From Tubulanus polymorphus (lineage: Eukaryota > Animalia > Nemertea), in assembly GCF_964204645.1 (NCBI RefSeq), contig NC_134033.1, forward strand, positions 10,920,655 to 10,984,654: a DNA stretch of 64,000 nucleotides, in the 5' to 3' direction. Under the pieces are notes generated by a model, which was not told where the DNA came from, did not search any database, and worked only from the letters and a program-made list of their open reading frames with translations. This document shows positions 1 through 55,783 of this stretch, in pieces. Each line of letters starts with the position of its first letter. Position 1 is the stretch's first letter. The translations under genes and the position numbers were made by a program.

Positions 1-102
1 CCTTAGTGTTATATTAGGAACCGCGGCTGATGCTTTTTCAAAATACGCTTTCGTTGTTGAGATTTTTATACACGTGGACCTCGTCTAATCGACTTTGATA
101 AG
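1..102 (+). promoter_or_regulatory. Candidate distal non-coding exon
   Basis: Donor GATAAG|GTAAGAG at 103, nearly identical to the real donor at 37257, followed by CpG-rich sequence (about 150-300). TTAGT at 3-7. Confidence 0.3.
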
Positions 103-9769: not shown

Positions 9770-9913
9770 CAGGGGCCGGTTGCATAGTCATGGCTTAGAC
9801 TTAAGACCAGTCTAAGACCAACTTAGTTCTATAGCCAATCCAATAATTTAAGACCAGTCTTAAGATTTAAGACCGCTTTTGGACTTAAGTCACGACTGTG
9901 CAACTGGCCCCTG
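9770..9913 (+). mobile_element. MITE family A, copy 1 (PIF/Harbinger-like)
   Basis: TIRs CAGGGGCCGGTTGCATAGTC / GACTGTGCAACTGGCCCCTG with internal TAAGACC repeats. Homologous to 48320-48463 in opposite orientation. Confidence 0.8.
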
Positions 9914-15600: not shown

Positions 15601-15769
15601 GCATTGTCGCAATCAAAGTCCGGTTTAAGAAGCATTTTAGCTAATACAGTCTTTGTACCCCGGTTTCTAAACACTGCAGTGACCATTCAACATCCTTTTC
15701 AGAAATTGTACTGAGGTATTAAGACACTCGTTTAAAAAGCATTGAACGCTTGGTTTAACCAGTGTTTAA

Positions 15770-16057
15770 CCCTTTCAGTGCTGGCTAATTAATACCCTAT
15801 AGTGCTGAAGATAATTTGAAAATTCTGAAAAATTCCACCCTAGTGTGTTGAATAACAGGAATAGCACTACAGTGCGTCTACACCGCGGTGCAGTGTATCG
15901 TTAGTTACTAATATTTCACTATGTATCACAGGTGCTGCCATCTTTCAAGAGAGATAATTAGTAATTACTAATTAAATCAATACACCGCAGTGCGGTGTAC
16001 TAGCAAAATCCATCACTGATTTGTACACTGCACTGCGGTGTAGACGCACTGAAAGGG
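15770..16057 (+). mobile_element. piggyBac-like MITE family B, copy 1 (288 bp)
   Basis: TTAA|CCCTTTCAGTGC ... GCACTGAAAGGG|TTAG. CCC/GGG termini and a TTAA target are piggyBac hallmarks. Internal CACCGCAGTGCGGTG-type palindromes. Confidence 0.85.
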
Positions 16058-19000
16058 TTAGGTAAATTCCGCGGTTAGTTAGGGTTAGTTTGAATCTCCT
16101 TGAGATTTAGTTGAAAGTTATTTAATTGTTATCCATAGAAAGCTATTCATTGGCATTTTGGATTAAGTTGTTATTTTTGATTCCATTGAAATACATATTC
16201 ATGAAATCACGATCCAATCAGAAAACTGGTTGCCATACAGGTTATGTGGAGACTTTACACTTGGTTTCTGTGACTCATTAGAAATCGAATCAGAAGTTAA
16301 GTACGCTGAACCCGAATAATTTGGCGAGCATTTTTGCGAAGGTAATTCGCTCCTTTGCATTTTTGAATATTCATTTGTTTGATGAGGTCTGAGGCGCGAT
16401 GAATCGAGAAATCATGCTTAATAATCTCTCCTCATCGTGGTTGAATGCGCGATCGTAACAGGCAGCGGAAGAGAGACTGTCTAGTCTGTCTGTCTGTCTG
16501 TCTGACTGACTCGTGGCGGGGCAGACCGACCGACGGACAGACGGATGCACTGATGAATATGTGGCGATGATAAACGGGAAATATATTCGATAAGATTATT
16601 AATAAACCCCTCGTGCAGAATTCAGACATTGATTAGAGAATTTTTAAGCAAATTCTTATGCAATCAGTAACAGCATGTGAAGAGGTTCACAGTCTGTTTC
16701 ACAGTGTGTTGACTCATCGGCGGGTTGAATTAGATTTCATGGACTTCAGTCAATTTTCGTGTTGGATGACATTTTTTTCCGTTCATTGCTAATTGAAATA
16801 AAGTTAAGTTTGCGATCGTTCCTATGGGATATGCTGATGATTGGTTGACCATAGAGTCAGTATCCTTGGACTTGATCAATCCTAGAGAATGTCAGCCTTA
16901 ATGAAACTCAGTCTTCGACTGACCACCATAGTACGTCATATTCTGGTAGTGATAGCGACTGACTTTGATGTGCCTGAGTTGCAGTGTCAGAGAACTGGCT
17001 CAGTGTGCTGTATTATATTAGCAACAATCACACGGAGTTGATTTGGCCCGGATCTGGCCCAACGGAGTTTTTGACCAATTGGCCCGTGCCTGATTAAAGA
17101 ATGTATCAATACGTAAACCATGGACCGATAATGCTTGTGTGATCGTGTGTTTTATTTGCAGTCACTGGTCTTTGTTACCCTAGAGATGCTTAAATCCGTC
17201 GAGCCATTCGAGTACTGTGACTCTTCTGCACTTAAGAGTTCCTCGTAATGCCACAAGTGCGCTCGACAGTAAAAGGAAGTTTCTGCTTTTTGATGTGCTT
17301 CGACGACGTCTGAGTTTAGAAAAAATAAATCTCCGATCCAATAAAGCGTCTGTTGAAGGAAGTCACGTTCGTAAGTCTGGCTGTGTCAATACGGCCGTAT
17401 CCGTTGCTAGGCGCGAGGCGTTTTTTCGGCAGACGCCGTAGACAAAAATTAATATATTATCGGAAAAGTTTTGTGTATACACGGACGCTGTCTGTGATGC
17501 AACCGCTCGTCATTTCCTTATTCATCTTCTGAAACTTTTTTGTGTATCTCGACAACAACTGGGATTTGCCAATTTACGAAGTGATAACCTGTTTATATTT
17601 CATCTGTCGAGATTTTTTTTGTTCGAAGATAACTGTTGTTTCTATTCCTAGCTAGCATTTTAAAATGAGGCTCTGGATTCAGAAAGAACGAATTCTTAAA
17701 TCCGTTTGATTTATTCATCAATTCAGTTTATGTTGAATCAATGTTGACACGTTTTGTGGGACCCGGGATAAATGTTAAACACAGGCAGAAGCAATATCTA
17801 TAAAACTTACTTGTGCTTGATTTTGCCCAGGCCTAGCTTTCAAATCGATTCTAGTTCAGCTTGAGTTGGTTAAACTTTGACATATGTATTAACTAGTTTA
17901 TATATTCATGGTTTAACCAAAGGTGACGCATTAAACACGGAGGTAGCTATGATAGAATAAACGGGCAAAATGTCGCAACAGTGTGGTATATAGACAGACC
18001 TCTACCACGGAGGGAGGGAAATACCAAATGAAATCAACAGTGTAAAAAGAGATAAATCAAATCAATAATGTTCATCAGACTGAAAGGAAGCAACCTGATC
18101 CAGAATGCAGAACTCAGCTACTCAATATTCCAGACAGATCTCATCTCACGAGACCTGACGCATCTCTGATGTTGTCGTCTGCATCGTGGCTGTCTTTTTT
18201 CTCCTTGCTATTCGCTGATTTTGTATTTCATTACCATAACATTGTCTGTTGTATGCTGTTGATAGATCTCAGACTGGAGACACTGAGACACGGAGAGACG
18301 AGACAAGAGTACGTTTAGGTCACTGGTAATTGAAGCCTCCAATCTAGACCTGTATTTCGCCCAACTCCCAGATTTTAGATTTGGTTGTAGAAGATGAAAA
18401 TGCCGACATCAGTTTAACCCTGATGCAACCCAACTGAAATACAATATACTTGTCATCACCCAGGCTTCACATGTTCAATCCCTCATCTCATATATCATAT
18501 TTCTTTATTGGGAAAATACCATTTAGGTAGTTTATCAGCAAATAGTGATAATCACTTCAAAGTACTCAGGATCTGAGATATCAATTGAAAATGTGGACTG
18601 CAAACGCCATCTTTGAAACCACTTTATACCAAAATAAAGTCATGTCTTGAATAATAGCTTGTTCTTGATATAAATCTCGGAGCATAAGACCACAATTGAG
18701 GTTAGGAAATCAGTGTCGTAAGTACTATTTGAGAGACTGAATTTCATTCATTTGATTAGTTTCCAGCCGTCTGTCTGTCTGTCTGTTTTTTTGCGCGGTG
18801 TTCGAGACACTGCATTGATTTTCTTCACGACAGCATCGTCGACTGTAACACTCAGCCATTCTGGGCACGTCTGCTCGAGCCGTCACAAGAATTTCAACTT
18901 CAGCTTGATTACCGATAAAAATTTTGTATGCGCTCCCTCGTGTTGATGTCCCGACTGCCGCAGCCCCCTTCACCGCCATGTCATAAAGGGTTAAATCAAA

Positions 19001-24899: not shown

Positions 24900-25082
<183 letters not shown>

Positions 25083-36264: not shown

Positions 36265-36454
36265 AGGCTAAAAAAAACGGATACCTTGTTTCTAATTTCT
36301 GCCGAGCTTAAAAGTTGACCCGGCCGGCCGCCTGTCTCATCTACCCTATAAACCGTAATAGACCAGGTAGTTATCGAAACGAACTGATTACACATTTAAA
36401 CGCTCGTTTCCCGGACGCCGATCGGGAGAAACGAGGTATCATTTTTTTTTGCCT
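36265..36454 (+). mobile_element. MITE family C, about 190 bp, about 200 nt upstream of the ATG-exon acceptor
   Basis: Imperfect TIRs AGGCTAAAAAAAACGGATACCTTGTTTCT / AGAAACGAGGTATCATTTTTTTTTGCCT. A direct copy lies at about 9998-10212. Confidence 0.7.
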
Positions 36455-36651
36455 CAGTTATGATCGACTTTCTCTTGGACTATAACCATAAAACGGTACT
36501 TAGAAAGAGATTAAAAAAAACTACGATTACATAATTATTATTTGTGTCTGTGACGAGCAGTTTTAGAGGCAGACGCTGTGTATTTTTCTACCTCACTAGT
36601 AATTATACTGAATTAACGCTAACATTTTCGTCGTTCGTTTTTGTTTTTCAG

Positions 36652-37064
36652 ATCTCCGGGGAAAGTTGTTGAAAAAAACTTCAAGCAAAAATCTGGTGTC
36701 GTATCGAATCGATGGCTTCTTTAACCGTCGATAATACGTCGTAACCGATAACAACTGCTGTTCGCCGATCGACTGATCTCAAACGCTGCGAGCGAAAGCG
36801 CGGTCGTTGTTGTTCTCTCGCCCTACAGGGGGAGCCGGTGGTCGTCGCGCGACTACGAATACGAGGACGAAATTGTGTTAACGCTTTCCGATCCGCGTGG
36901 CTGTGGGCGTCTATCATAGTATTATCATCGTTGATATTTGAATAATCTTGTGTCGATCGTTAATTGTGATATATTTGTGTCTCTATATATATATATATTA
37001 GTATCAATATATATATATATATCCGTCTTAATAAATATATATATAAATATATATATATCTAACT
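36652..37064 (+). other. mbl: 5' UTR part of the ATG-containing mbl exon (whole exon 36652-37256, 605 nt)
   Basis: Strong 3' splice site: branch-point-like GCTAAC (36618-36623), pyrimidine tract ttttcgtcgttcgtttttgtttttc, AG at 36650-36651. Confidence 0.75.
36712..36744 (+). promoter_or_regulatory. Upstream ORF (MASLTVDNTS*) in the mbl 5' UTR
   Basis: ATG GCT TCT TTA ACC GTC GAT AAT ACG TCG TAA. It is the only ATG seen between the acceptor (36652) and the main ATG (37065). Confidence 0.5.
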
Positions 37065-37256
37065 ATGGCCATGGTCAGTCCGACGATGATGAACTTGGCA
37101 AACGTAAAAGATTCTCGCTGGCTCACGCTGGAGGTATGTCGCGAATATCAGCGTAATAAATGTACGCGGCCGGACACTGAGTGTAAGTTCGCTCACCCGC
37201 CAGCCCACGTTGAGGTGCAGAACGGACGCGTTACTTGTTGCTTCGATAGTATAAAG
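37065..37256 (+). CDS. mbl: Muscleblind-like CCCH zinc-finger splicing regulator, first coding exon (64 codons: ZnF1 and start of ZnF2)
   Basis: Translates as [64 protein letters not shown]. It has the diagnostic Muscleblind [14 protein letters not shown]-terminal box and a C-x7-C-x6-C-x3-H finger. It ends at a strong donor AAG|GTAAGA (intron starts 37257, phase 0), the conserved intron position in mbl/MBNL after DS(I/L)K. Confidence 0.97.
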
Positions 37257-39445
37257 GTAAGAGGAACCTTTTTTCATTGATCTTTTTCAGTCCACTCGCT
37301 ACTTCAGACGCAGCGGGTTAAATGCGATCACTTTTTGTCAGTCGGCAGATGGAATCCAGTTATTTTGGGAAGTTTTGAAGATGCTTCAATGGATCGTGTT
37401 GATATTTGGTTTGTACATGTATCTACCCTAGACACATCTCCACTCCAAAAACTGGTCCGGTCGCGATCGACGACCATTGTCTCACCACCAGGGGAAGTTG
37501 ATTATTGAATTATTCTATTCATATTGGTACCTTTTTTGCATATTTTCTAACTGCAATTAATTGCAAAATAGTAGCTCATGACATGATGAGGTGTGGTGAA
37601 TGTCAAGGTTATTGGTATCTATATGTTCACCAGAAGCATTGAATATTGAAATTTTGACATTGTAAAGCATTTCAAAACCTTCACCAAGAGGGCATGGTTT
37701 CCCTGGACCCCAGTTTCATTCATGTTTGACTATCATCAGTCTTATGATGGTTCTGGAGACATATCCAGAAATGACTAACTAATTTTTGGTTACAAAATGG
37801 TTTGTATCAATATTAATCTTTTGTACTGTAGACTTTTTTATGACTTATGTAGGTCATCTAGGATGCGGGTCATCGCTACAGCCATACTTGTAGAGCCTTC
37901 ATATTTCAGCTGACTGGTATTACTAGTGTAGTTGAAAATAACTCCCTCTGATGGAACCATAAGGAAGAGCTTCTAGTCTGATAATATTGACTATTTTCAT
38001 GTGTGGGTGAGTGGGGAGTTAGTCTGTATTAGTTCATTGGCTCCAAAAATGCTTGTTTGATCTAATGATCGAAATCATACTCTAGACTTCTGAAACTGTC
38101 AATAATATATCATAACCAGCGTTGTTTGAGTCTTTTCCTTTTTTCATTGATTTCGTATGATATGTAGACATGACTATTGTTCAGTATAGAATAACACAAT
38201 GGCCTTGACCTCAGGTGAACCCTTGCGTGCTGGTATAAATGGACTGATTGATAATAGAACATTTTTCCTTCCTGGAAGGAAAGAATAATTCGCCACATTT
38301 ATGCACATTATATACAGACCAATTGGGACAGTGTATTTCTGCTTAGAGATAGTTAGTTCTGTATAAGGGGTTCACAGCACCGGTAAAATTCATTTAGAAT
38401 TTCATCAGATCCTGAACTGTCTCTAATTATTAGGAAAGGTTCTTTACTGACACAGCTTTGCAAAATGGTTTGCTGTCCCTGTCTTTGTAATTGGTTAACT
38501 GTCCCCTTAATGAAGTGCTTCATCCAGGAATATTCACTATTCTAAAATCCCTTATTCTCAGGAATGTGTTACTGTCCTTGAATGTCAAGAACAATCCCTG
38601 GAAATAGTAAATGGGTCAGTTTTGTCAGTTCTTCAGAAATTGGCTCACGATTGCTCGTAGCATGGATTCACAGAAACACTTCATAATCCCTGATTAAAAG
38701 GATTTCAAAGTCTACCCCAAACTGGAATGAATATACTTTTTTCATATGCTGTTTTAAGCCAGGTGGATTTGTCAATATGATATGCTAATTGTGACTGCGA
38801 CTGCTGGCAATATTTGCCAGAAAAATGAACATTCTGTTTGCTCTTTAGATATCACGCACATGATAACTGACGCTATAGAGTCAATTGTGAAATCGGGGGC
38901 AATAAAGGCAAACAAATTCAAACATGAAGTAGGCAAAAATACATTTAATATCTGAGCCTATAGTACGAATAGAGTGACATTAGTTACAAGTCAATATTCA
39001 TTAACTCTTTATATCTTTATAAATGAACAAATATCAATTATCATAATCATTATATCAAGCGAAATTTGAGTTTAAAAATATTTTGATGACTCAAATGCAG
39101 TGATTGAAAGATAGGAGTAAAGGTAGGGGGCGCGAGTGTATCTTTTCAACTGATCGCGGTGAATTCATTGATTGCCCAAACAATCTACCATACGCTGACT
39201 AAATCGCCCGGCAAAGTGCCCGTATTCACCTATTTTGTTTTTCAGGCCAATTATTTACACCGGCGATCGAATAGCCAACAAATTGCTTGTCTGTCCGCAT
39301 TAGGCGTCTTCCGGTTTTTATCAACCAATAGAATGCATTGTTTATATCATGTGATAGTTTGATCGCTACGCTCCGGCTAATAAATTCACTGGTGAATTCA
39401 ATCATTGTGAGCGGGCAAAATCTACGTTCAATGTGCCCAATCTGT

Positions 39446-39803
39446 CCCTGGTTTGTCAAAAACAGTCCCTTGTTGTCACAAACGATCCCTGGATTGTCAC
39501 AAATGGTCCCTGGTTGTCACAAACGATCCCTGGTTGCCACAAACGATCCCTGGATTGTCACAAACGATCCCTGGATTGTCACAAACGATCCCTGGATTGT
39601 CACAAATGGTCCCTGGTTGCCACAAACGATCCCTGGATTGTCACAAACGATCCCTGGATTGTCACAAATGATCCCTTGTTGTCACAAACAGTCTCTGGAT
39701 TGTCACAAACGATCCCTGGTTGTCACAAACGGTCCCTGGATTGTTACAAACGATCCCTGGGTTGTTACAAACGATCCCTAGATTGTTACGAACGATCCCT
39801 GGT
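39446..39803. repeat. 20/21-bp minisatellite
   Basis: Unit CCCTGGATTGTCACAAACGAT. Confidence 0.95.
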
Positions 39804-40097
39804 TCTTGATTTTTTTCACGTTCGGAGAGACCAGGAATTCGATTTCCTGCGTGACTAAGAAACTGAGACGAAGTTAGAATATCTCGTATTGCTACTGCTC
39901 AGCTACGCGAGGAAGGAAGTTCCAGCTCTTCCTTACGGAATTCCCTTTGAAACACGATCTCACATTTAATGTCAAGGTCATTATCTGCTGCAAGGGTATA
40001 ATGATATATGAAGGATTAATCAATCCAGTGTTTGCTGCTACCTCGTATTGACAGTGTCAGTTCACTTTTCTCGCTCAGTGTCTTCTTCTTGGACTTC

Positions 40098-40238
40098 AAG
40101 GCATGCTCCTCATGACCTCTCCGAGGCATGCTGCTGATATCTCCGAGCCATGCTCCTCCTGACCTCTCAGAGGCATCCTCCTGATATCTCCGAGGCATGC
40201 ACCTGACCTCTTCAAGGCATGCTCCTCCTGACCTCTCC
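40098..40238. repeat. Degenerate tandem repeat of about 24 bp
   Basis: AGGCATGCTCCTCCTGACCTCTC variants. Confidence 0.75.
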
Positions 40239-43200
40239 GTACAGCTACACAACTGATCAATATTCTCATCTATCATTATGGCTTATTTACCTAACAAACT
40301 ACCCTGTGGTATCAGTACGGGTTCCAGGAGGCAATTTTCTATGCCTCATTAACCAAAATAAACACTTTCTATCTAAAAAGTGATATTACGTATATATATT
40401 CAGTACTGCACCGGTTCCAATCTTGCCTTCAGCGTACGCATACATTTTACATGCCTAGAGGTGCAGGGTCCTCAGAACATCGTCTAGAATTAACATAATT
40501 TATATACGAAGGCTTAAAAATCCATGAGGGAGAAAAACTATATATTTTTCGAGATTATAATGGAAAAAGACTTGAATTCTTGCTAGTCGATATATGCAAA
40601 TTGAGCAGACGCTCTTGTACCATATGGAGAAGACGTTGCGTTTAAAGATCTATGTAAAAATATTCGTACACGCAAGGTGTTTATGTCAGAACGACTTAAT
40701 GACATCTGTCGTCATCTCAGCAGACACAACACGCTAGCTAATTTGTATAGGTTTATGTATATCCCAGATCTAGATTTTATATATCGAATTTTGTCTTCAA
40801 AGCCCTTGAAACCGTAGAACTCAACAACGCCCCAAATAGAAAGGAAAACCACAAGACTTGATTGAGGCCACGATGCAATAAATAGAAACACATTTTTTCG
40901 AAATTTTCCAACAAGAAATCATCTCGCGGAGGCCTGGAATCTGATTGCAACGATTCGTTAAAGTTCTCTGGGGGATGCCTAAAACCATTCCTGCTGCAGA
41001 TCTACATAATCAGTATTTTCCCTATTTTGAAATATGGTTTAGGATATTGGTGTCGTTAAAAATTCCTTTTATGAAAATGTTAGGGCTGCATCAACCACAA
41101 ACAGCCCCATTTTCAGAAACATGGCTTCACCCTGTGCATGTGAAATTAGGTGCCCTTTTTAATCCCCAGGATCTCTAAGATGATTGAATTCTGTCTGGTA
41201 TATTCAGCTGGTCCTGTAGCTATATTCAATGTAGCAGGAAAGCTATTTCAACCGGTTAGAGACACAATTTTCTGCCTGGGATTTCACCGTCCATGATGTA
41301 TATTGTTACGACTGGATTGATGGGTGAAACAGCTCTATAAAAGTTAATCTACTGTTTATGGCTATTTACTGTCCCCTATTGATCGCTCAATCGAATGTTT
41401 CTCTTCTATTTGGAGAAAATTTAATTAAGATTCTTTGAAAGCTGTTGCTTTTCTAGGTTGTATGAGGGTTTAGAATTTACTCATCTTTTCGCTATTGTCC
41501 TCATAAATTCCGTATTTGGCTCATAGTCTGTATTTATAATACTTGCTGCCCTGGGGAATTACCTAGAGATGTGTCACCTGTGATCAAGAATTTATGTAAC
41601 TACCTTGTCCCAAATTAAAAAGCAATATGATATTTTTATATTTGATTTGAAATTTTCCCCTAAATTATGTAATGTTTTAATAGAGCCAGTGTTATTCACT
41701 CCAGGTTCAAGAATTAACTTTTAAGAAATCTGATAAAGTGGTACTTTAGTAGCCAACATTTCTCTAATGTTTGTGACCTTCTTAAAGAAAGCATATTTTA
41801 GGCAGGTTATATCATGTATGATATTTTATAGATGGCCTATGATATTCCGCATCAGTATTTCCTGGGCGGGTCTAAGGAATTGTGAAATCTTATATTGCCC
41901 AGAAGGAGTTCATCATACATTCAGATGTTTGAATATTTCATACGACAACAGATGTCTTGTGGGGATATAGCATTTCTGTTTAACAAAGCTCTCTCCAGTA
42001 GAACCCAATAAATAATCCAGGTACTGGTATATGTAAAGGACTGACTGCTACCATCAGGATTCAAACGCATCAACCCTGGATTACTGAGAATCGGGACAGA
42101 GCTGGAGCTGCTACACATCACTGACCCTAGTGCTAATTGTAACTTTTAACGTAATTGACCTGTGAAATCACTAATAGTTAATATCTTGGCTCCAAGATAT
42201 TGAAAATGGCTGCTTCATGTGATGTTCAGGAATATGTATGACTGAGTGCTCGTCACGCCATCTGGTGGGATAACTAGTATTGCTATTGCAGCTCCAATCG
42301 CTGATAAATTCCGTCTAGATACTATAGGCTCATGAATACCACCAGCATCCAAACTGATTTATGAGAGGCCATCACTCGTATCTTAAACCACTTGATCGCT
42401 CACAGAATTTAAAATCCCAGGACATTTTAGCCAAATTAGAAAAATTACGAACATTTATTCCAAGTTTTTTTGTCAGAAAACTGGCTGCATTCAAACGTAA
42501 ATGTTCACACAGATGCTTCATAGCTGAATACATTTTCAATTATGCAGATATTTTGAATCAGACGCCCGATTCTGCCGATTCTGTCGATTCACTGTTGTAT
42601 CTACTACATGACAGTTGAATTAGAAAAAAATAGAGTCTGTCTGCATAGCTGGAGGCTGTGTAACTGGGTGTGGCCGTTTAGCAATTTCTTCTCAATAAGT
42701 ACTCCCGAGTTCAGATCGGTGCGAAGCATGCTAAAAATCCGCATAAATCCGACACTGCGTAATTCGAATTGATGATGACACTCTGTACGAGTTGAATAAG
42801 TCTGCTATATCGACACAAAGCGGGTGGCTCCTGATCTAGGGGTGGCACCAGATCTAGGGTTCCGCACGGTAGTGACGCATTAATACAATATTATCAGCAG
42901 CTCCAAATCAACAGCACTTTACCGATAAAACTCAAAGAATGAATATTTAACTAAATGAAGAATTAACAGCTTTTAGAATCTCTATTCCCAATTCCTGGAT
43001 TGATGATCCTACGACTGGTTCAATAACCACTTCTAAATTCTGGAGCTGATTTTATAGACACGTTCAAATTATAACCACCTGAGTTAGTTTTAGTGAGTAG
43101 TTTTTGAAATTACTATGAAACCAGGAAAATTGCTTAGAATATGACAACATTGAAATATTGTGTAAGAATTTTAAGCGCATATATTGGCTTATACCCTTGG

Positions 43201-45302
43201 ATGAACCCGTGTAAAAAAGGGTTTCAAGTTTCATTGTACGGTAAAATGATTCATGAAAGCTTCAAACGTCGGATAATTTTCAATTTGAAAAAAATGAGAC
43301 ATCCGAACGTAATTTAATGCTATTCAACGTGCGAAGTTCAAATTTCATTGAAAGCTTTATATAGAGTCTTTTTATATTATCTACCCTTTTATCATTATAG
43401 TTCATCTTCAAAGTCGGGTGTGAAATTTAAAAATTAGATGTCATTTGTCATGTCATGTCTGGTGCGTTTAAGAAGTTTCTGTTGTTTTTTTAACCGTCAT
43501 TGTTTCTGCAAAAAATATATATATGCGATTGACAATTCATACATTTCATTATATTTCTGTGTTTATCATTTCTGTCTGTGATGTTGAATTGATCCTTTGA
43601 TGTTTTTGAAGTTGTGTCGAACGCGTGTGAGGGAAAAATTGTGTGATATTTTGCGTGTTGTTGATGAAAAGATAAAGTGATGTGTATCGCTTATTGCTAT
43701 ATATGGAAATGTGTCAGAAATCTTATATAGTCAGCTCAATTGAAACAGGAATCATCATGTGTTGGTTCAATTGATTAACAGCTAATAATCTTGACTGATA
43801 AATTAATCGTTATTACGGTTGAAAAATTCTAATCATCATATTTCGATATCGAGAGGTTCCCAAAAAAATTTTGAAGATTTAAAGAGTCCATTGAAAACCC
43901 ACAATTATTTGTATTCAAAATGTTGTGGTTCCATTAATTTCTTCATCAAAATGCTGTAGATTTCAATTGAAAATTGTGTTCATTTATTCAGCGTTTAAAT
44001 GAATACGTTGGAAAATTTAATTTTGACAGAAAAGGTGGACATGTTTTACTATATAAAGGTAGCCTATAGACCTATTAAGTCTACACATTTCTATGATTAG
44101 ATATTTAAACCTATTGTGACAGTGACCCAACCGGTGACCTCTCATGTGGCCTCATTCATCTACTCAGCAGACTATTTGACCAAGAAGAAAATCAGTTAGT
44201 CTAGCCATAATCATTGTAGTGGCACACTCTATAGAGGCTCCCGATGGGTGAAAATAACACAAGTGCTATTTGACCACTATTACCAGGAAATTATTTAGTA
44301 AACAGTAATTTAAGCTCGTATAAATATTTGCCATGGCGACTAGTAACACTGACCCAGTAATATAGAGAACTATGCGCCTATAGTCACCATATTTCAGTTT
44401 GTAGTTTGATCATAGAATATTCCATGAATTTTTGTCATCGTAAAAGGTGAATGTATTACTTAGAGTCATGATTGCCTATAGATTCAAAATGGCTCATGAA
44501 AGCAGCGTCAACCTTGTAGCTGCACTCATTGTGGAAAAAAAAACAGTCCTATGAATAAAACACCCGGCACAAATTGATATTGTTACGACATGAATTCCAC
44601 GTGGAACTCAACAATTCCCTTTTTGTCAGCATTCATTTCTCGTGCATTCAAATCGAAATCAACATTTTATGAAGGAAATCAATTGCAATTGTCGATGAAA
44701 ATCTTGTATCTTTTCTCATGCGCTGAAAAAGTTACTCTTAGTCACACGACGCTGCAACCTTGACGATCTCTGAATTAAGCTTCTAATCAGGCGTCGCTGA
44801 TACCTGAAAACGTTCATTTCCAGTCTAAACATCTCGTCACGCTTATCACCGACGAATTGGTCGCCTGTCGCGATGATTTGACGCTTTTTTTGTCCGCCTG
44901 GAGAGGAAAAATTGACAAACGAAAATTAGGATTTACGAGACGAGGGTAAGCGCGTAATTCAGACATTAATTCTCGCGTTGACGTAATTGATCTTAGACGA
45001 CTAATTCCGTTGTCGTTGCCGATCGCTACGCGACAGATAATTACTGATCAACTACCCAGACGACGCGACGGTTAGCAGACGCGTGCTCCTCGTGAAATAA
45101 AAAACAGGAGGAAAAAGTAAATAAATGCGTATTTGGTGATTTGGTGATTTCAGCGCTATTAGAACAATACCCGATAGTCACGTAACGTATTGTGGAGAGG
45201 GTTATTCTGTAATTCATGTTGATAGCCGTCATTATCAACAGTCATTAATTGACGGTGAATACAAAACTTGTGTAAATAACAATCACTGATATTTCACCTA
45301 TT

Positions 45303-45762
45303 GCCAAACACCCCCTGAATCCCTGCCACGCACCCCCTATACACCCCCTGTATCCCTATACTGCGCCCAAACACCTCCTGAATCCCTGTCACATGTCCAA
45401 ACACCTGAATCCCTGTCACGCGCCAAAACACCCCATGAATCCCATCGTACATCCAAACCCCCTGAATCCCAGTTGTACGTCCAAACACCAGCTGAATCCC
45501 TGTCACGCGCCAAAACACCCCATGAATCCCATCGTACGTCCAAACACCCTGAATCCCAGTTGTACGTCCAAACACCCCTGAATCCCTGCCATGCGCCAAA
45601 ACACCCCCTGAATCCCATTTGTACGTCCAAACACCCCCTGAATACCTGTCATGCGCCAAAACACCCCCTGAACCCCAGTCGTATGTCCAAACACCCCCTG
45701 AATCCCTGTCACGCGCCAAAACTACACCTGAATCCCTGTCGTGCGCCCAAACACCCCCTGAA
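45303..45762. repeat. C-rich minisatellite of about 30 bp
   Basis: CCAAAACACCCCCTGAATCCCTGTCACGCG variants. Confidence 0.9.
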
Positions 45763-46952
45763 TTTTTGGCCACCAACTGCATTTATCCTCACCATGTCAT
45801 CTAGTCTGACTAGATGAAATCGTAGCATTACTGCAACTTACCAATGCATAGCCATAGTCATATTGATGCAACTTACCCGTACAGAGCCATGTTCCTTTTA
45901 TTGCAACTTACCCATACAGAACTATATTAGTGTAACTGATGCAGAGCCATATTCATGTTATTAATTAGTAGTATTTCCTCGGTAGATAAGCTACAAACAT
46001 TCGTATCTGCATCGAAAAACAAATTTGCTGCATTAGTGCCGGTCCAGGTAATCTGTCCACGCAAAGTTTAGGGTAACGATCGCGTGATTGATGGTAGGGA
46101 AGAGACTTTCCTCAATTCTAGCGCGGAAAATCGGGGCACAGACATTTGACTATGGACATCACGTAGACTGTTAGCGTTATCCGGTTGATGGTAGAGCTGG
46201 GAGCACTCGACGACGGCTAATTAGTCTATTTACCTGGTGATTATGCGTCTCGTGATGTCTGTTTTACGAGTTCGTACCTGTAATAAATGTCCCTCGTCGG
46301 CGACACGGGTAAGACCTGGATATCGGGTATCGCTAGAGACGACACGAGACGACGCGAATAAATAATCCGCCAGCATTGTCATCGAGTTAAGCGGATCATT
46401 GTGTCGACATTTCCGCGGTGACCGTCGTCTATTCGCAGCGACGATAGCGACTTAGCACCGGAAAAATTGTCTCATCGGCGCGAGTTTTACACCGATCAGT
46501 TTGAACATTAACGTACTGATCGAATTGTTTTATGGTGTGAAAGATATTCGTCATTCACGATGAATAACTCGAGGGTTACTTTCATTTGAAAACCTTTAGA
46601 CAAATTTCTGAACTTTCTTGAGTGTCTGAGAACGTCTCAAAAATGGTTAATCGTGAAAACAGTTTCAGAATGTCAGGAACGCTCCACACTATTGAATGTG
46701 TGCTAACATAAACACTTTAACTGTCTCCAGTGAATGTGGTACTGGCAATGCTACTGTGTCAAGTGAAATTCCATCATTAGGTGTGGCGCCAGTTTGCTGT
46801 ACAACATCATCGCTGGATTTCTCAAACTCGATCAAAATCTAACAATAATTTCTCAAATTCTATGCATGATGTATGAAAATCATGCCACTCTCAACTTTTG
46901 CAAAATTGAGATCAAAGTTTTTGAGAATAGACTGATTTTGATCGAGTTTGCG

Positions 46953-46989
46953 TGATATGTTAGTGGCGCCATCTGACGGGATAACTGGT
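46953..46989. repeat. 37-nt sequence, exact inverted copy of 54678-54714
   Basis: TGATATGTTAGTGGCGCCATCTGACGGGATAACTGGT. A related motif occurs at 42252-42276. An adjacent 17-bp inverted repeat (about 46823 / 46934) suggests a small TIR element. Confidence 0.9.
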
Positions 46990-48319
46990 ACGCCGGTACC
47001 CGATTGTCAGTCGGTCGTATACGTTTCATTTGGGAAGTGTTCGCTTAGTCGGTATTTTTTCAATTGATTAATAGACCAGTTCTCTATAAGCTATCCATCT
47101 TAGCCGGCACGTAATATAAGCGCTGGGTGGAGTCTGCTTACCTGCGTCTGGCTCGCTGCGTCTATCGGTCTCTCGGGTGGTATGGCCTACCACCATCAAT
47201 CATACTTGTGTTTAAACGCCGCCGCCGTGGCTGCAACGCCAAAACGGATATGTGAACCGCGCCGGACTCCCCGATATCAAATGGCCACCGATAAACACCG
47301 ATTAACTCGCATGCAATGAAAAATGATTGTGTTGTTTGTTAAGCAATCTCCCGTACTGGTATCAGTCTAAAAACGGACAGACTATGAACAAATGAATCGG
47401 GATTCTCCAGATTTCTCGCTCGAGGCTGCGGTAGAAATGCCTTTAATTCACTCCTGATCGTGATCAAATTCATAATTTATAAGATCGATTTACAATTGCC
47501 ATCAATTTGCTGATTCTAATATTTTTCTCGTATTTTTGTGATGTCAAAGTGGTATCACCAGTGATGTCATACAGAAATCTTATGGACTTATTTTAGTGAA
47601 AATACTTTATTGGTTTTAACCTTTACTATTCGTCAATTTTTCATCAATTTGACAACAAAGAAAATCACTTGGTCGGTTTTTCCGCTGTTGGCTGTTTTCG
47701 ACGCAGCAGCGACGATAGACATGGCTTTCCTCATAGAAATCAATACCCAACATCCGCTGATCCATCGCATTACGCAATATATCGGAAACCTCCGGCAGCG
47801 CGATCTAACAAAAGAAGTCTCAACGTAGCAAGTCCAATGCTTACAATAACTGCGATTTTTTTGTGTGTCTGTGTTCTAATCCACTGCCAGACAATATACA
47901 ATGGGTCCGTCTGCGTAAAATGCATTTCGTGGACTGCGGCTTATGGCGTTGATAATTGCTGCTCTTGTTTAACAATCAGGATAACAAGTTGGGCGGGGTT
48001 CACTAGTTTTAATGGAGTTATTATGAAGACTACGCTCTTCATTTTTGTCTTGGATCTTTTTATTCTACAATGCTCCCGCTGCTTTGAAGAGACAGGGATA
48101 AATAGAACGCTGAAAATCACTTAGTCAAATCTCATTCTCGATGACATACATATTTAATAGAATTATGATTTGTTATTAGAATTACGGACGGAGCTTGACT
48201 GAAATTCATTGATTAAGTTTTGAAAGTCCTATTTTTGCCGTGCGTTTTCCTGAACGTGATAAAGACCGAAAAAACAAAAACTAGCGATACAATAAGAGTT
48301 TAGGATTAGAGTTAATAGA

Positions 48320-48463
48320 CAGGGGCCGGTTCCTCAGTTGAGACTTAAGTCAAAAAATGGTCTTAGATTTTAAGACTGGTCTTAAGTTGTTAGATTGGTT
48401 ATAGAACTAAGTTGGTCTTAGACTGGTCTTAAGTTTAAGCCATGACTATGCAACCGGCCCCAG
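48320..48463 (-). mobile_element. MITE family A, copy 2 (inverted relative to copy 1)
   Basis: CAG|GGGCC...GGCCC|CAG is consistent with a 3-bp CWG target duplication. Its reverse complement aligns end to end with 9770-9913. Confidence 0.8.
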
Positions 48464-49269
48464 GAGTTTAGCAGGTGACAGTCGATAGACAGGAGTTTAG
48501 GGTCAGGGTTAGGTGACAGTCGATTAGTCCTACGAGCGATTATTACGAGTTAGATAATTGCTCGTAGATTAGTCGAACGAATGTATGAAATTCGTGACCG
48601 AAACAAAGATTTCACGTTATCAATTATCAGAGTTCTATTTGTCGAGTTCTGCTTGAAAATTACGATGACAAAGCTTTGTATAAAAACATTACACAATCAA
48701 TTATTCGGTAGCTGTTGAAATTGCCGATTGTCGTCGCACGGGCGACAGACCGGGCACGGACCGGGCGACAGACCGGGTGACGCAATCTGGTGTTTTTTTC
48801 CAGAGATACGGGAAGCGTTTAATACCGAGTTAATAATCGTTAATTAGATGGATGTTGGCGCGTTGTTCAGACCACCCATGGCGCCGAATAGATTCATCGG
48901 GTACGCGCCAATGCGCCAACACGCGGCGTCGGGTAGTTTGATTGATTTTGATTATCTAATACGTTATATTTGCGTGCAGGTGTCTGGCGCGTTCATGCGG
49001 TATACGGAACACGCACGTGCTCGCGGCTGACGCTGCTGAAATGAAGATTCTTTGTGTGTTTCGTGTATATTGTTATCCCGATAATGTTACACAATGATTG
49101 CGATAAAAACTACGCCGAACATGGGCGTAAATTCCAAACAAAAACAATATCAATTGAATTGAATTGTCGAAATCATCTCCAGACAGTACTGCCCTCTATG
49201 AGGATCGATATTTGTTACGCGAATAATTATTTTGAGGAAAATCTCCTTTTATTACGCAGCACATATTAA

Positions 49270-49557
49270 CCCTTTCAGTGCATCTACACCGCAGTGCAGT
49301 GTATGAATCGGTGATGGATTTTGCTAGTACACCGCACTGCAGTGTATTGATGTGATTAGTAATTAGTTTTTATCTCTATTGAATGATGGCAGCACCTGTC
49401 AAACATAGTGAAATATTAGTAACTAACGATATACTGCACCGCGGTGTAGACGCACTATGTTGGTATTCCCATTTTTCAACACACTAGGGTGGAATTTTTC
49501 AAAATTTTCAAATTATCTCCAGCACTTTAGGGTATTGATTAGTCAGCACTGAAAGGG
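49270..49557 (-). mobile_element. piggyBac-like MITE family B, copy 2 (288 bp, inverted)
   Basis: TTAA|CCCTTTCAGTGC ... GCACTGAAAGGG|TTAA with an intact TSD. The interior is the reverse complement of 15770-16057 with scattered substitutions. Confidence 0.88.
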
Positions 49558-52304
49558 TTAATATGAGCCCAACAACAACTGCTGATTTGCAAGAATTTTC
49601 ATGATAAACTAATAATCGTAAAAGTGATTGTTTTCTATGGAGTGAACTGTAATCAAACGGTATATTTCTATGTAAAGGTTTTAAGATTTCTGTGTCTGTT
49701 TTTTTCCGGATCCTCGGTGCGTGCATAATGAACACCGCGCGGATTCAGTTCCACGTTCAACTCATAAATATTACCCCGGTTTATTTTTTCACCTCCACGA
49801 TTGAGAACATACACTGAAAAAAGTTTTTTTAGCGTAGGCGGCAGGACCCAGTTTCACAGGTGGGTTTGTGTAACGCCATTTGCCAGAATTCTTGAACATG
49901 CATTGTAAAATCATCTAGGATTTTCAATCTTTCTACTTTCCTTGCGCATCATTCGAGTTTTTAAACCTATTCGTGAAAGCCAGTTTTTGGATACAGCAAA
50001 TACGGTCTAGATCGAGCCCTGAGCTGGTCATATTTTGTGGTTGAACCGATGCTGCGTGTCCCCGCTGCTGCTGCTGCGTGTACGCGCACCGTCATTGGAT
50101 ATTATAAAAAAAATATGCCGAGACACCCCAGCGACAACCTGTAATGTCTGGTTACCATGGAAACAGATTTACCGGCTTTGATGGTTGATAATAATTTTGA
50201 GGAGACTAGAAGAGAGTGTGTTTGTAGAGTCTCATCAGTCGGTCGTGTCTTTCATCTCGCCCTCGCTGCTTCTGTTCCGTCAGTCTGGCCATCTGTGTGT
50301 CAGTATTCTCTTCACCTCTCATCTGCTAGCAATGTTTCCTCTTCTACTCGCTTTCATTTTCACCTGAGATATTTTACGTCTCTTTTTTTATCCCTCCCTT
50401 TTCAAAACATCTTCCCTGTCTCGCCTACTTTCTCAATCTCTATCTCACTCCTCTCCCTCTTCCTATTACAATTATTTGCTTATGAATTAAATGTCATATC
50501 TAGTCTCTTTCATATATTTAGCAAGGAGTCTCCATATTCTACTTATTATATTTCTTTTATTTTCGAGGACGAAAACTTTCCAAATGTAGTAAGGGAGTAT
50601 ATAACAAAGCCATTTCTACTTTGATGTTATTGTATCTTAAGTATTATTATTTCATCTTAACTATTAGTATCTGCTAATTTGTTTGTTTAGTAATTCATTA
50701 ATCCGTGTTCAGACCGATTTCCCACTAATGTATGAAACAATGAGGTCGGGTGCCGTCAGGTAGGTCGATATTATCGAGAAGATTTCCGTTATATCCTATG
50801 ATTAATCTTCAGAAATAACGAAATACGACTGAAATTGTGATATCAAAACGAGATACGGCAAATAATAAAAAACTCGGAGATGGCGGAAAAAGCGATGGAC
50901 CGGACTAGTTTGGCACTTGTCACCTGCCAGTCTGTCACATGTCTCTCTGTTTGTTCTGTTTGTAACCAATATTACGTATAACTTATAAGATTCAGAAGAA
51001 TCGTTAGATACGGGCATTCTCGCAAAGTCAGGCTTGGAGTCTGCGTGAAATTCAGACACATTGAGCAGAATTAAGTCGTCTTCAACTGAAATGTCATAGT
51101 CTTCGTCATCTATATCGAGTTAGTTCCCGAAACGACTCGTAGGCAGAAAAATAGCGTTGCTAAACTGTCTTTCACTCACACCCTCCCCTCAACTCCGGGC
51201 CCCTCTCACTCTCTTCCTGTCTTTCACTCATAACCCCCCCTCCCTCAATCTTCTCCCCCTCTCGCTCATTGTGTTGGGTCTCTTTCTTTCCCTCTTGCAC
51301 TCTCCTATTTATTCCAATTCTCACCTTCCCCTCCCTTCTCTCTCTAATTCCCCTCCCTCATTAGTTATACCTCTTCTCTCTTCTCTCCCCTCCTCTTCTC
51401 TCAGTGGCTTCTCATTGCTGTCTGGTGCGTTCAGGTGATTGATGATATTGGTAAAGCCGATTGTTGACTGGTGCACGTTGATTGATTGATTATCGGCTGC
51501 ATGAATTCATTCGAAACTCTCCTATTATCGCACGATTGGCTCCAATCAAATTCACCGATCAAATAAATAAACTTCTAAACTCTTAATTTCATCGGATCAG
51601 CGTCGAAAAATTCACTTTCGAACGCGGATTTTGTGCCCCACAAGGCGCCCCACGTTGGATCTATATTACTAAAAGCGTATGATTGATTTCACCTCGACTG
51701 TGGTGGTGGTTATTGTCGTTAGAGTTTTAATTGAGGTTTGATTTCATTCAGAGAAAATTTGTCCTGATTATGATGGAAATTTTGATGAGATTGTTGTGCG
51801 TAGAAAACTACTGTCAAACCTGGTGCATCCTCACTGATACTTTCAGTATTTTAAGCTTATGCCAAAAGACGATATATTATTTAGTACATTTTCAATTCAT
51901 TGAATAAAACCCAAAATTGAATGAAATCATAAGCGCTATCTCGACGTTTCAACCCGAATACTTTCAGCTATTTTTGAAACTGATTTATTTCAAAAAGGCT
52001 CAAAGAATGTTTTATTTCGGAAAAAGCTCATAGAATTTGAGCCAAAATATCAAGATAATTCTAAAAGTTTCTTTCGATATTTCAATGTACAGATAGTCAG
52101 TTTGTTATCTATGAAAATGAACATTTGAAATGGTTTAGACTGTTCTGGTCTATGGGAATACTTTGATCTGTAGAAGATGGCCTTGAGTGTTTGAAAGGTA
52201 GACAGACAATGTTTACGTCTTCACTGTAGTTTTTTGTGTGATTCTTCATGTTTTTCCTGGAATACACTTTACCTCAGCTATTTCTGGCCATGTTTCATCG
52301 GCGC

Positions 52305-52541
52305 TGAGAGCCTGTGTGAGCCTGTGTGAGCCTGTGTGAGCCTGTGATAGCCTGTGTGAGCCTATGAGAGCCTGTGTGAGCCTGTGAGAGCCTGTGTGAG
52401 CCTGTGTGAGCCTGTGTGAGCCTGTGAGAGCCTGTGTGAGCCTGTGAGAGCCTGTGAGAGCCTGTGTGAGCCTGTGTGAGCCTGTGAGAGCCTGTGTGAG
52501 CCTGTGTGAGCCTGTGTGAGCCTGTGTGAGCCTGTGAGAGC
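52305..52541. repeat. 10-bp tandem repeat (CCTGTGWGAG) x23
   Basis: Seen directly; ends about 157 nt upstream of the 52699 acceptor. Confidence 0.97.
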
Positions 52542-52698
52542 TCTCGGGTTTTTATTACTAGCAAACTCAAACCTGCTAATGTGAAACTGGATCCAGAGCC
52601 GAATAAACCCCATAACTGGGAACGTGTTTCATGTTGATGACTGTTTGTGTCTGCTGGAAAGATTTCGTTAAAATTCTCTTCCGTTTTTATCTTTGCAG

Positions 52699-52866
52699 GG
52701 AAAATGTCAACGCAAGGAACCGCCGTGTAAATACCTACATCCTCCACAACACTTAAGAGAACAGTTATTACAGAATGGAAAAAATAATTTGATATTAAAA
52801 AATTTACAAATGCAAGTCGCGCAGGCATACGGGATGATGCCCATGATACCAAATGCCATGCCATAC
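52699..52866 (+). CDS. mbl: Muscleblind second coding exon (56 codons: rest of ZnF2 and Q/M/P-rich linker)
   Basis: Acceptor ttttatctttgcAG|GGA at 52697-52698. Translates as [56 protein letters not shown], completing [20 protein letters not shown] and the conserved HPPQHL-x-x-QL-x-x-NG-x-N segment. Donor TAC|GTAAGT at 52867, phase 0. Confidence 0.96.

Positions 52867-55693: not shown

Positions 55694-55783
<90 letters not shown>
55694..55783. repeat. (TA)n microsatellite
   Basis: Seen directly. Confidence 0.97.

Follow-up and report, generated by a model that had tools for sequence, protein, structure and literature searches.

The window analyzed here is a 64,000-nt stretch of the Tubulanus polymorphus genome, and all positions count from its first letter on the forward strand. 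By sequence reading, a 605-nt exon lies at 36652-37256 (+). This is the first coding exon of muscleblind and the candidate circle-forming exon, and RNA contigs from two public runs (X2 and X4) also cover it. The exon follows a pyrimidine-rich tract with the acceptor tttttcag/ATCTCC at 36652, opens with ATCTCCGGGG, closes with ...GATAGTATAAAG and is followed by the donor ATAAAG/gtaaga after 37256. Its 5′ UTR part (36652-37064, +) spans 413 nt. The coding part (37065-37256, +) consists of the ATG and 63 codons, with A at −3 and G at +4 of the start codon; these 64 codons (MAMVSPT...CCFDSIK) encode CCCH zinc finger 1 and end in phase 0. The second coding exon (52699-52866, +) is 168 nt long, holds 56 codons with zinc finger 2 and is in phase 0 at both ends. 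A preliminary description had reported a 605-nt exon with 5′ UTR, ATG and first finger, strong splice sites and a next exon in phase 0. The sequence and the Pfam matches bear out all of these coordinates, both splice sites and the phase. Upstream of the main ATG, the exon contains a single further ATG at 36712, which opens an out-of-frame upstream reading frame of 10 codons (36712-36744, +; MASLTVDNTS, then stop). A TA-rich microsatellite patch (36969-37058, +; Tandem Repeats Finder; A+T 76-90%) sits just before the main ATG.

Both coding exons matched the Pfam family zf-CCCH_10, with E values of 9.8e-11 for exon 1 and 2.1e-11 for exon 2, and together they present the N-terminal CCCH zinc finger pair with the muscleblind signature. 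Protein relatives were collected by a word search with the exon 1 translation, and the best 120 of 340 were examined. These had E values from 6e-31 to 7e-27, many were named muscleblind at the source, and the nearest among them (P0001) shared 88% protein identity. The start exon is single copy in the 268-Mb genome (77 contigs); the sole second protein match falls about 7.6 kb beyond the window and belongs to a later finger of this gene. No retrocopy or circle-derived pseudogene was found in the genome, the only matches being to the TA repeat. We are confident that 36652-37256 is the second exon, and the first coding exon, of the genome's only muscleblind gene. It carries the start codon and CCCH finger 1, along with the greater part of the 5′ UTR.

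The position of the intron after this exon recurs in other animals. Within the best 120 of 340 relatives, V directly follows the K of ...DSIK in 100 of 120 short relatives, a reading expected from read-through into a GT intron, which points to an intron position widely common to invertebrates. Among 80 environmental muscleblind loci, ...DSIK is followed by GT in 49 (genomic) and by exon 2 in 17 (linear mRNAs). Exon content and the intron position after DSIK match those of the circularizing exon of fly mbl and human MBNL1, in agreement with the orthology proposed earlier. Many insect annotations (P0020-P0078, e.g., P0025, P0051 and P0067) include short, 80-110-aa muscleblind isoforms that pass from the ...DSIK exon into an alternative terminal exon. 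Here linear mRNAs yield the single-finger proteins, and no circle is involved.

Splicing of the exon was examined in public sequencing runs, comprising X1 (DNA), X2 and X4 (RNA-like, available as contigs) and one further run without coverage. Depth in X1 covers exon and introns alike, which identifies it as DNA. Contigs of X2 (2024) and X4 (2014, a separate study) are locally confined to 36650-36958 and 37069-37257, the mapping tool having skipped the TA repeat between these segments, and they carry spliced joins, which identifies them as RNA. X4 contig 18 extends 202 letters upstream of 36650, the final 30 of which equal window positions 71-100 exactly. Past position 100, the genome reads AG/gtaaga at 101-108, with the GT donor at 103. 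This match and donor place the 3′ end of an upstream non-coding 5′ exon (1-102, +; GATAAG/gtaaga) at 102 and identify 36652 as an acceptor in use. The join from 102 to 36652 defines intron 1 (103-36651, +) with a length of 36,549 nt. On the other side, the letters that follow 37256 in X2 contig 9 and X4 contig 19 are GAAAATGTCAACGC..., with which the exon at 52699 opens; this join defines intron 2 (37257-52698, +) with a length of 15,442 nt. The start exon is spliced linearly, its acceptor 36652 being joined to 102 and its donor 37256 to 52699. The long flanking introns of the preliminary description now have lengths drawn from RNA joins, and the acceptor at 36652, on which its proposal hinged, is the one joined in X4 contig 18.

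The RNA contigs also revealed branches. X2 contig 8 stops exactly at 36650 and keeps the AG before 36652, which means that this acceptor receives two or more upstream sequences, each with a terminal AG; alternative first exons or promoters probably account for the multiple partners. Contigs of both X2 and X4 end at 52866, the last base of exon 2, so exon 2 has at least two downstream partners. This branch is most simply read as alternative downstream splicing directly after finger 2. X4 differs from the assembly at three exon letters (36694 T>C, 36880 A>T and 37154 T>A), the last of which is synonymous in codon 30, and these differences are ordinary polymorphism between individuals.

If donor 37256 were joined back to acceptor 36652, translation would continue into the first 21 nt of the exon, which read ISGESC and a stop in frame 0. 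The predicted one-exon circle would encode 64 + 6 = 70 aa, and the predicted two-exon circle (773 nt) would encode 126 aa. This arithmetic was correct as first given. Neither 605 nor 773 is a multiple of three, so any such circle closes its own frame. From arbitrary intron positions in the window, a stop is reached within 7 codons in 35% of cases and within 137 codons (the UTR length) in 99.7%. The closed frame had been offered as support for a circle; it is near-certain by chance and follows from any 5′ UTR, and the 70-aa and 126-aa reading frames carry no evidential weight for a circle. When the UTR was aligned with L001 (81% protein identity) and with the environmental mRNAs L010, L016 and L029, only the coding part aligned. 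None of the best 120 of 340 relatives of exon 1 was a protein ending in ...DSIKISGESC.

The fullest form of the proposal holds that this locus makes a conserved circMbl-like RNA, promoted by Mbl, autoregulatory and translated into 70 or 126 aa ending in ISGESC. An orthologous exon between long introns and the precedent in fly and mammals (PMC6769675, PMC5387669, 10.1101/2025.10.31.685782) argue for it, and the TA-rich patch before the ATG adds a resemblance, and a resemblance only, to AU-rich landing patches. Against it stand the chance expectation of a closed frame and an exon start and stop that do not align with the UTRs of the nearest relatives. With the junction and motif results below also weighed, we regard this full proposal as decidedly unlikely.

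The contigs were then read for back-splice junctions. No back-splice joint, 37256 to 36652 included, was present among the joints listed for the X1, X2 and X4 contigs. Contig ends gave a further line of argument, which is an inference from the tendency of de Bruijn contigs to break at branches. X2 and X4 contigs pass 37256 into exon 2 unbroken, and the X2 donor-bin depth of 33.1 is fully explained by one contig with a depth of 65 over 82 of 161 positions. This unbranched crossing and the depth accounting indicate that the one-exon junction is absent from the X2 and X4 assembly graphs. For the two-exon junction, X2 contig 8 keeps the AG, so all retained upstream partners end in AG. A join from 52866 to 36652 would read ...CATAC at its donor end and ...TAC/ATC across the junction, without AG before 36652, and the X4 contig passes from the upstream exon to 36652 unbroken. 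Contig ends argue against either predicted junction in these assembly graphs. The junction result, which counts against the full proposal together with the wholly linear depth at the donor, is a weak negative, because contigs drop rare forms and the loose ends listed were a part of the total. X2 and X4 also have no intron coverage, which suggests poly(A) selection, a method that loses circles; both libraries were probably poly(A)-selected.

Binding of Mbl to YGCY tetramers was the proposed driver of circularization. The exon contains exactly 10, as the earlier count of about 10 had it. The same number fails as support for a circle, since 8.7 ± 2.2 are expected when the exon is shuffled with its dinucleotides preserved (p = 0.35), and as many YGCY occur in 19% of 605-nt window tiles. 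The 300-nt flanks of the four splice sites contain 5, 2, 2 and 2 tetramers against a window mean of 3.0, and none of the four sites showed enrichment at distances of up to 300 nt or 1 kb. A local group of 5 YGCY in 130 nt occurs in a G+C-rich UTR patch (36756-36885, +). It ranks in the top 2.7% of 130-nt window tiles and at p = 0.33 against exon shuffles, and it is explained by the composition of the patch. Motif density in the exon, in the flanks and in local clusters gives no support to circularization promoted by Mbl, and these chance-level counts weigh against the full proposal.

The same group of motifs bears on a different explanation, in which muscleblind regulates itself through linear skipping of this exon rather than through its circularization, as reported for human MBNL1 e1 (PMC5389549). 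The five YGCY in a 130-nt segment some 100-230 nt from the exon start loosely resemble the mammalian arrangement, and the X2 contig that stops at the acceptor points to alternative upstream partners. However, exon composition accounts for the cluster, no 102-to-52699 join was seen among the contigs mapped here, and skipping would remove the only start codon seen. Regulation by skipping is therefore very unlikely in our assessment.

Pairing between the flanking introns was also considered. The exon is bracketed by only two inverted-repeat pairs, neither of which comes within 11 kb of its splice sites. The longest has arms at 15766-16060, which is 20.6 kb from the acceptor, and at 49267-49561 in intron 2, which is 12.0 kb from the donor; the arms span 295 nt and are 91% complementary. 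The second pair joins 9772-9913 with 48320-48461. By duplex energy, 70% of random intron pairs bind more strongly than the 400-nt flanks. In the flanking introns, complementarity did not rise above background, and nothing was found near the splice sites. The remaining inverted pairs consist of (TA)n microsatellites. Long (TA)n microsatellites occur in introns 1 and 3 (2240-2414, 24908-25082 and 55694-55783) and account for nearly all inverted repeats across exons. Intron 2 also holds two tandem arrays, one at 39445-39802 (21-nt unit, 17 copies) and one at 40102-40239 (22/47-nt unit), the latter of which gives a YGCY-dense patch. Two further segments flank the exon, 36298-36425 at about 230-350 nt upstream of the acceptor and 37347-37438 at about 90-180 nt downstream of the donor. 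In X1 and in the larger RNA run, their word depth reaches 10^4-10^5. In X4, the small RNA run, it is about 18-33, where the exon itself has about 2-7. These depths identify both segments as pieces of very high-copy, transcribed repeats. The two are not complementary to each other.

Intron length is the sole circle-favoring feature found at the locus. This observation fits an explanation in which back-splicing occurs at a low level, as a by-product of slow or erroneous splicing, and has no regulatory or coding role. Introns of 36.5 kb and 15.4 kb, with no motif clusters and no flank pairing beside them, speak for such an origin, and an error hypothesis for most mammalian circRNAs is argued in one study (PMC8365531). 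On the other side, the circle of this exon is abundant and regulated in flies and mammals (PMC6769675, 10.1101/483271), and no junction appeared among the X2 and X4 contigs. A by-product origin is a real possibility, though less likely than not.

Evidence for circularization of an orthologous exon came from another animal. One relative, P0036, differs from the others after ...DSIK, and its source is the 934-nt contig L009 from JGI sample 3300056998. The first and last 123 nt of L009 are identical, which gives a period of 811 nt. Such identical ends are the mark of a circular path in assembly, and 123 is the largest word size in JGI metatranscriptome assemblies. After GACAGTATCAAG, L009 runs into AACAGAAGTACC... 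and then through a 30-residue tail to a stop, past which a long UTR with a TA-rich patch (L009:239-300) leads back to its own ATG. The closed reading frame encodes 92 aa. A related genomic contig, L015, has 93% DNA identity to L009 over the coding part. In L015, the letters homologous to the L009 join start at position 663, after the canonical acceptor tttccag/AACAG, and the coding part ends at ATCAAG/gtaacg (L015:3186). This acceptor and donor indicate that L009 represents a back-splice-type join of the orthologous exon. Its source is probably an insect, in keeping with an arthropod-like N-terminus. L009 may instead be a linear tandem repeat of the exon, as the contig alone could also show. 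No further circular assembly was found among the 80 environmental muscleblind loci. This circular assembly favors the general idea of start-exon circularization, and for the full proposal at the present locus it counts as a precedent from a different invertebrate.

L009 parallels the window exon in several respects. Both have a long UTR with a TA-rich patch, the ATG and finger 1. The L009 exon ends in ...CYDSIK with its join exactly at the conserved donor, which in the window follows ...CCFDSIK, and its frame closes after a short UTR tail, as predicted for the window exon. The two differ in that L009 comes from another animal with 83% protein identity and that the tail past the junction is 30 aa in L009 and 6 aa in the window. 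The L009 circle is an observed assembly, whereas the window circle is a prediction.

The circMbl/circMBNL1 circle is the textbook example of a translated circRNA whose production competes with linear splicing of the host gene, and its conservation is stated as extending "from flies to humans". In the literature searched, we found no report of a muscleblind circRNA in a mollusc or annelid. If true, a start-exon circle in this spiralian-type lineage would date to the bilaterian ancestor, and it would provide a third independent lineage in which Mbl sites, AU-rich landing patches and intron length can be compared. The window itself yields an RNA-supported exon map and exact predicted junctions, without evidence for the circle itself. 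The content, the intron position and the very long introns shared with the circMbl and circMBNL1 exon make some back-splicing plausible. Back-splicing of the start exon in the Tubulanus lineage is a sound prediction by homology, although none of the tests made here supports it. In our estimate, the chance that back-splice reads would be detectable in total RNA from nerve or muscle is close to even. That the start exon also circularizes and that its circle serves in mbl self-regulation or is translated seems unlikely. Taken as a whole, the present data confirm the observation made in the preliminary description and neither support nor refute the interpretation placed on it.

Comparison with the known systems shows where the window exon agrees with them. 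Drosophila circMbl forms from the second exon of mbl, and Mbl sites in the flanking introns promote the circle (PMC6769675). In flies, it has been documented by junction reads, RNase R resistance and northern blots (PMC5387669). Translation from the host start codon to a stop soon past the junction is supported by footprints and a peptide (PMC5387669; 10.1101/2025.10.31.685782), and AU-rich patches have been reported as ribosome landing sites on circMbl (preprint 10.1101/2025.10.31.685782). In mammals, MBNL1 e1 is 1049 bp long, lies between exceptionally long introns and includes, at the 5′ end, a CLIP-bound stretch of 190 nt with nine conserved YGCY; human MBNL1 binds YGCY in the 5′-most part of e1 and excludes e1, and e1 circRNA is present at a low level in muscle (PMC5389549).

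Against this background, fly Mbl sites drive the circle, whereas YGCY is not enriched in the window exon or its flanks and no junction is among the joints listed for the probably poly(A)-selected contigs. The window also differs from the fly in having fingers 1 and 2 on separate exons. The mammalian e1 has 1049 bp and a conserved YGCY cluster, while the window exon has 605 nt with YGCY count and clustering at shuffle level; the group at 36756-36885 bears a loose likeness to the mammalian 5′ cluster, here as sequence motifs only. The window exon shows neither YGCY clustering nor intron pairing above background. It has the structural features of a circMbl-type exon, namely, orthology, content and long introns. 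In common with the fly circMbl exon, it combines the downstream portion of the 5′ UTR with the host start codon and the first CCCH finger, and its TA-rich patch at 36969-37058 recalls, by resemblance only, the AU-rich landing patches of circMbl. The fly protein is close to that of the window (...KDSRWL.LEVCRE.QRNKC...), and the fly frame ends shortly past the junction inside 5′ UTR letters, as the predicted window frame would too.
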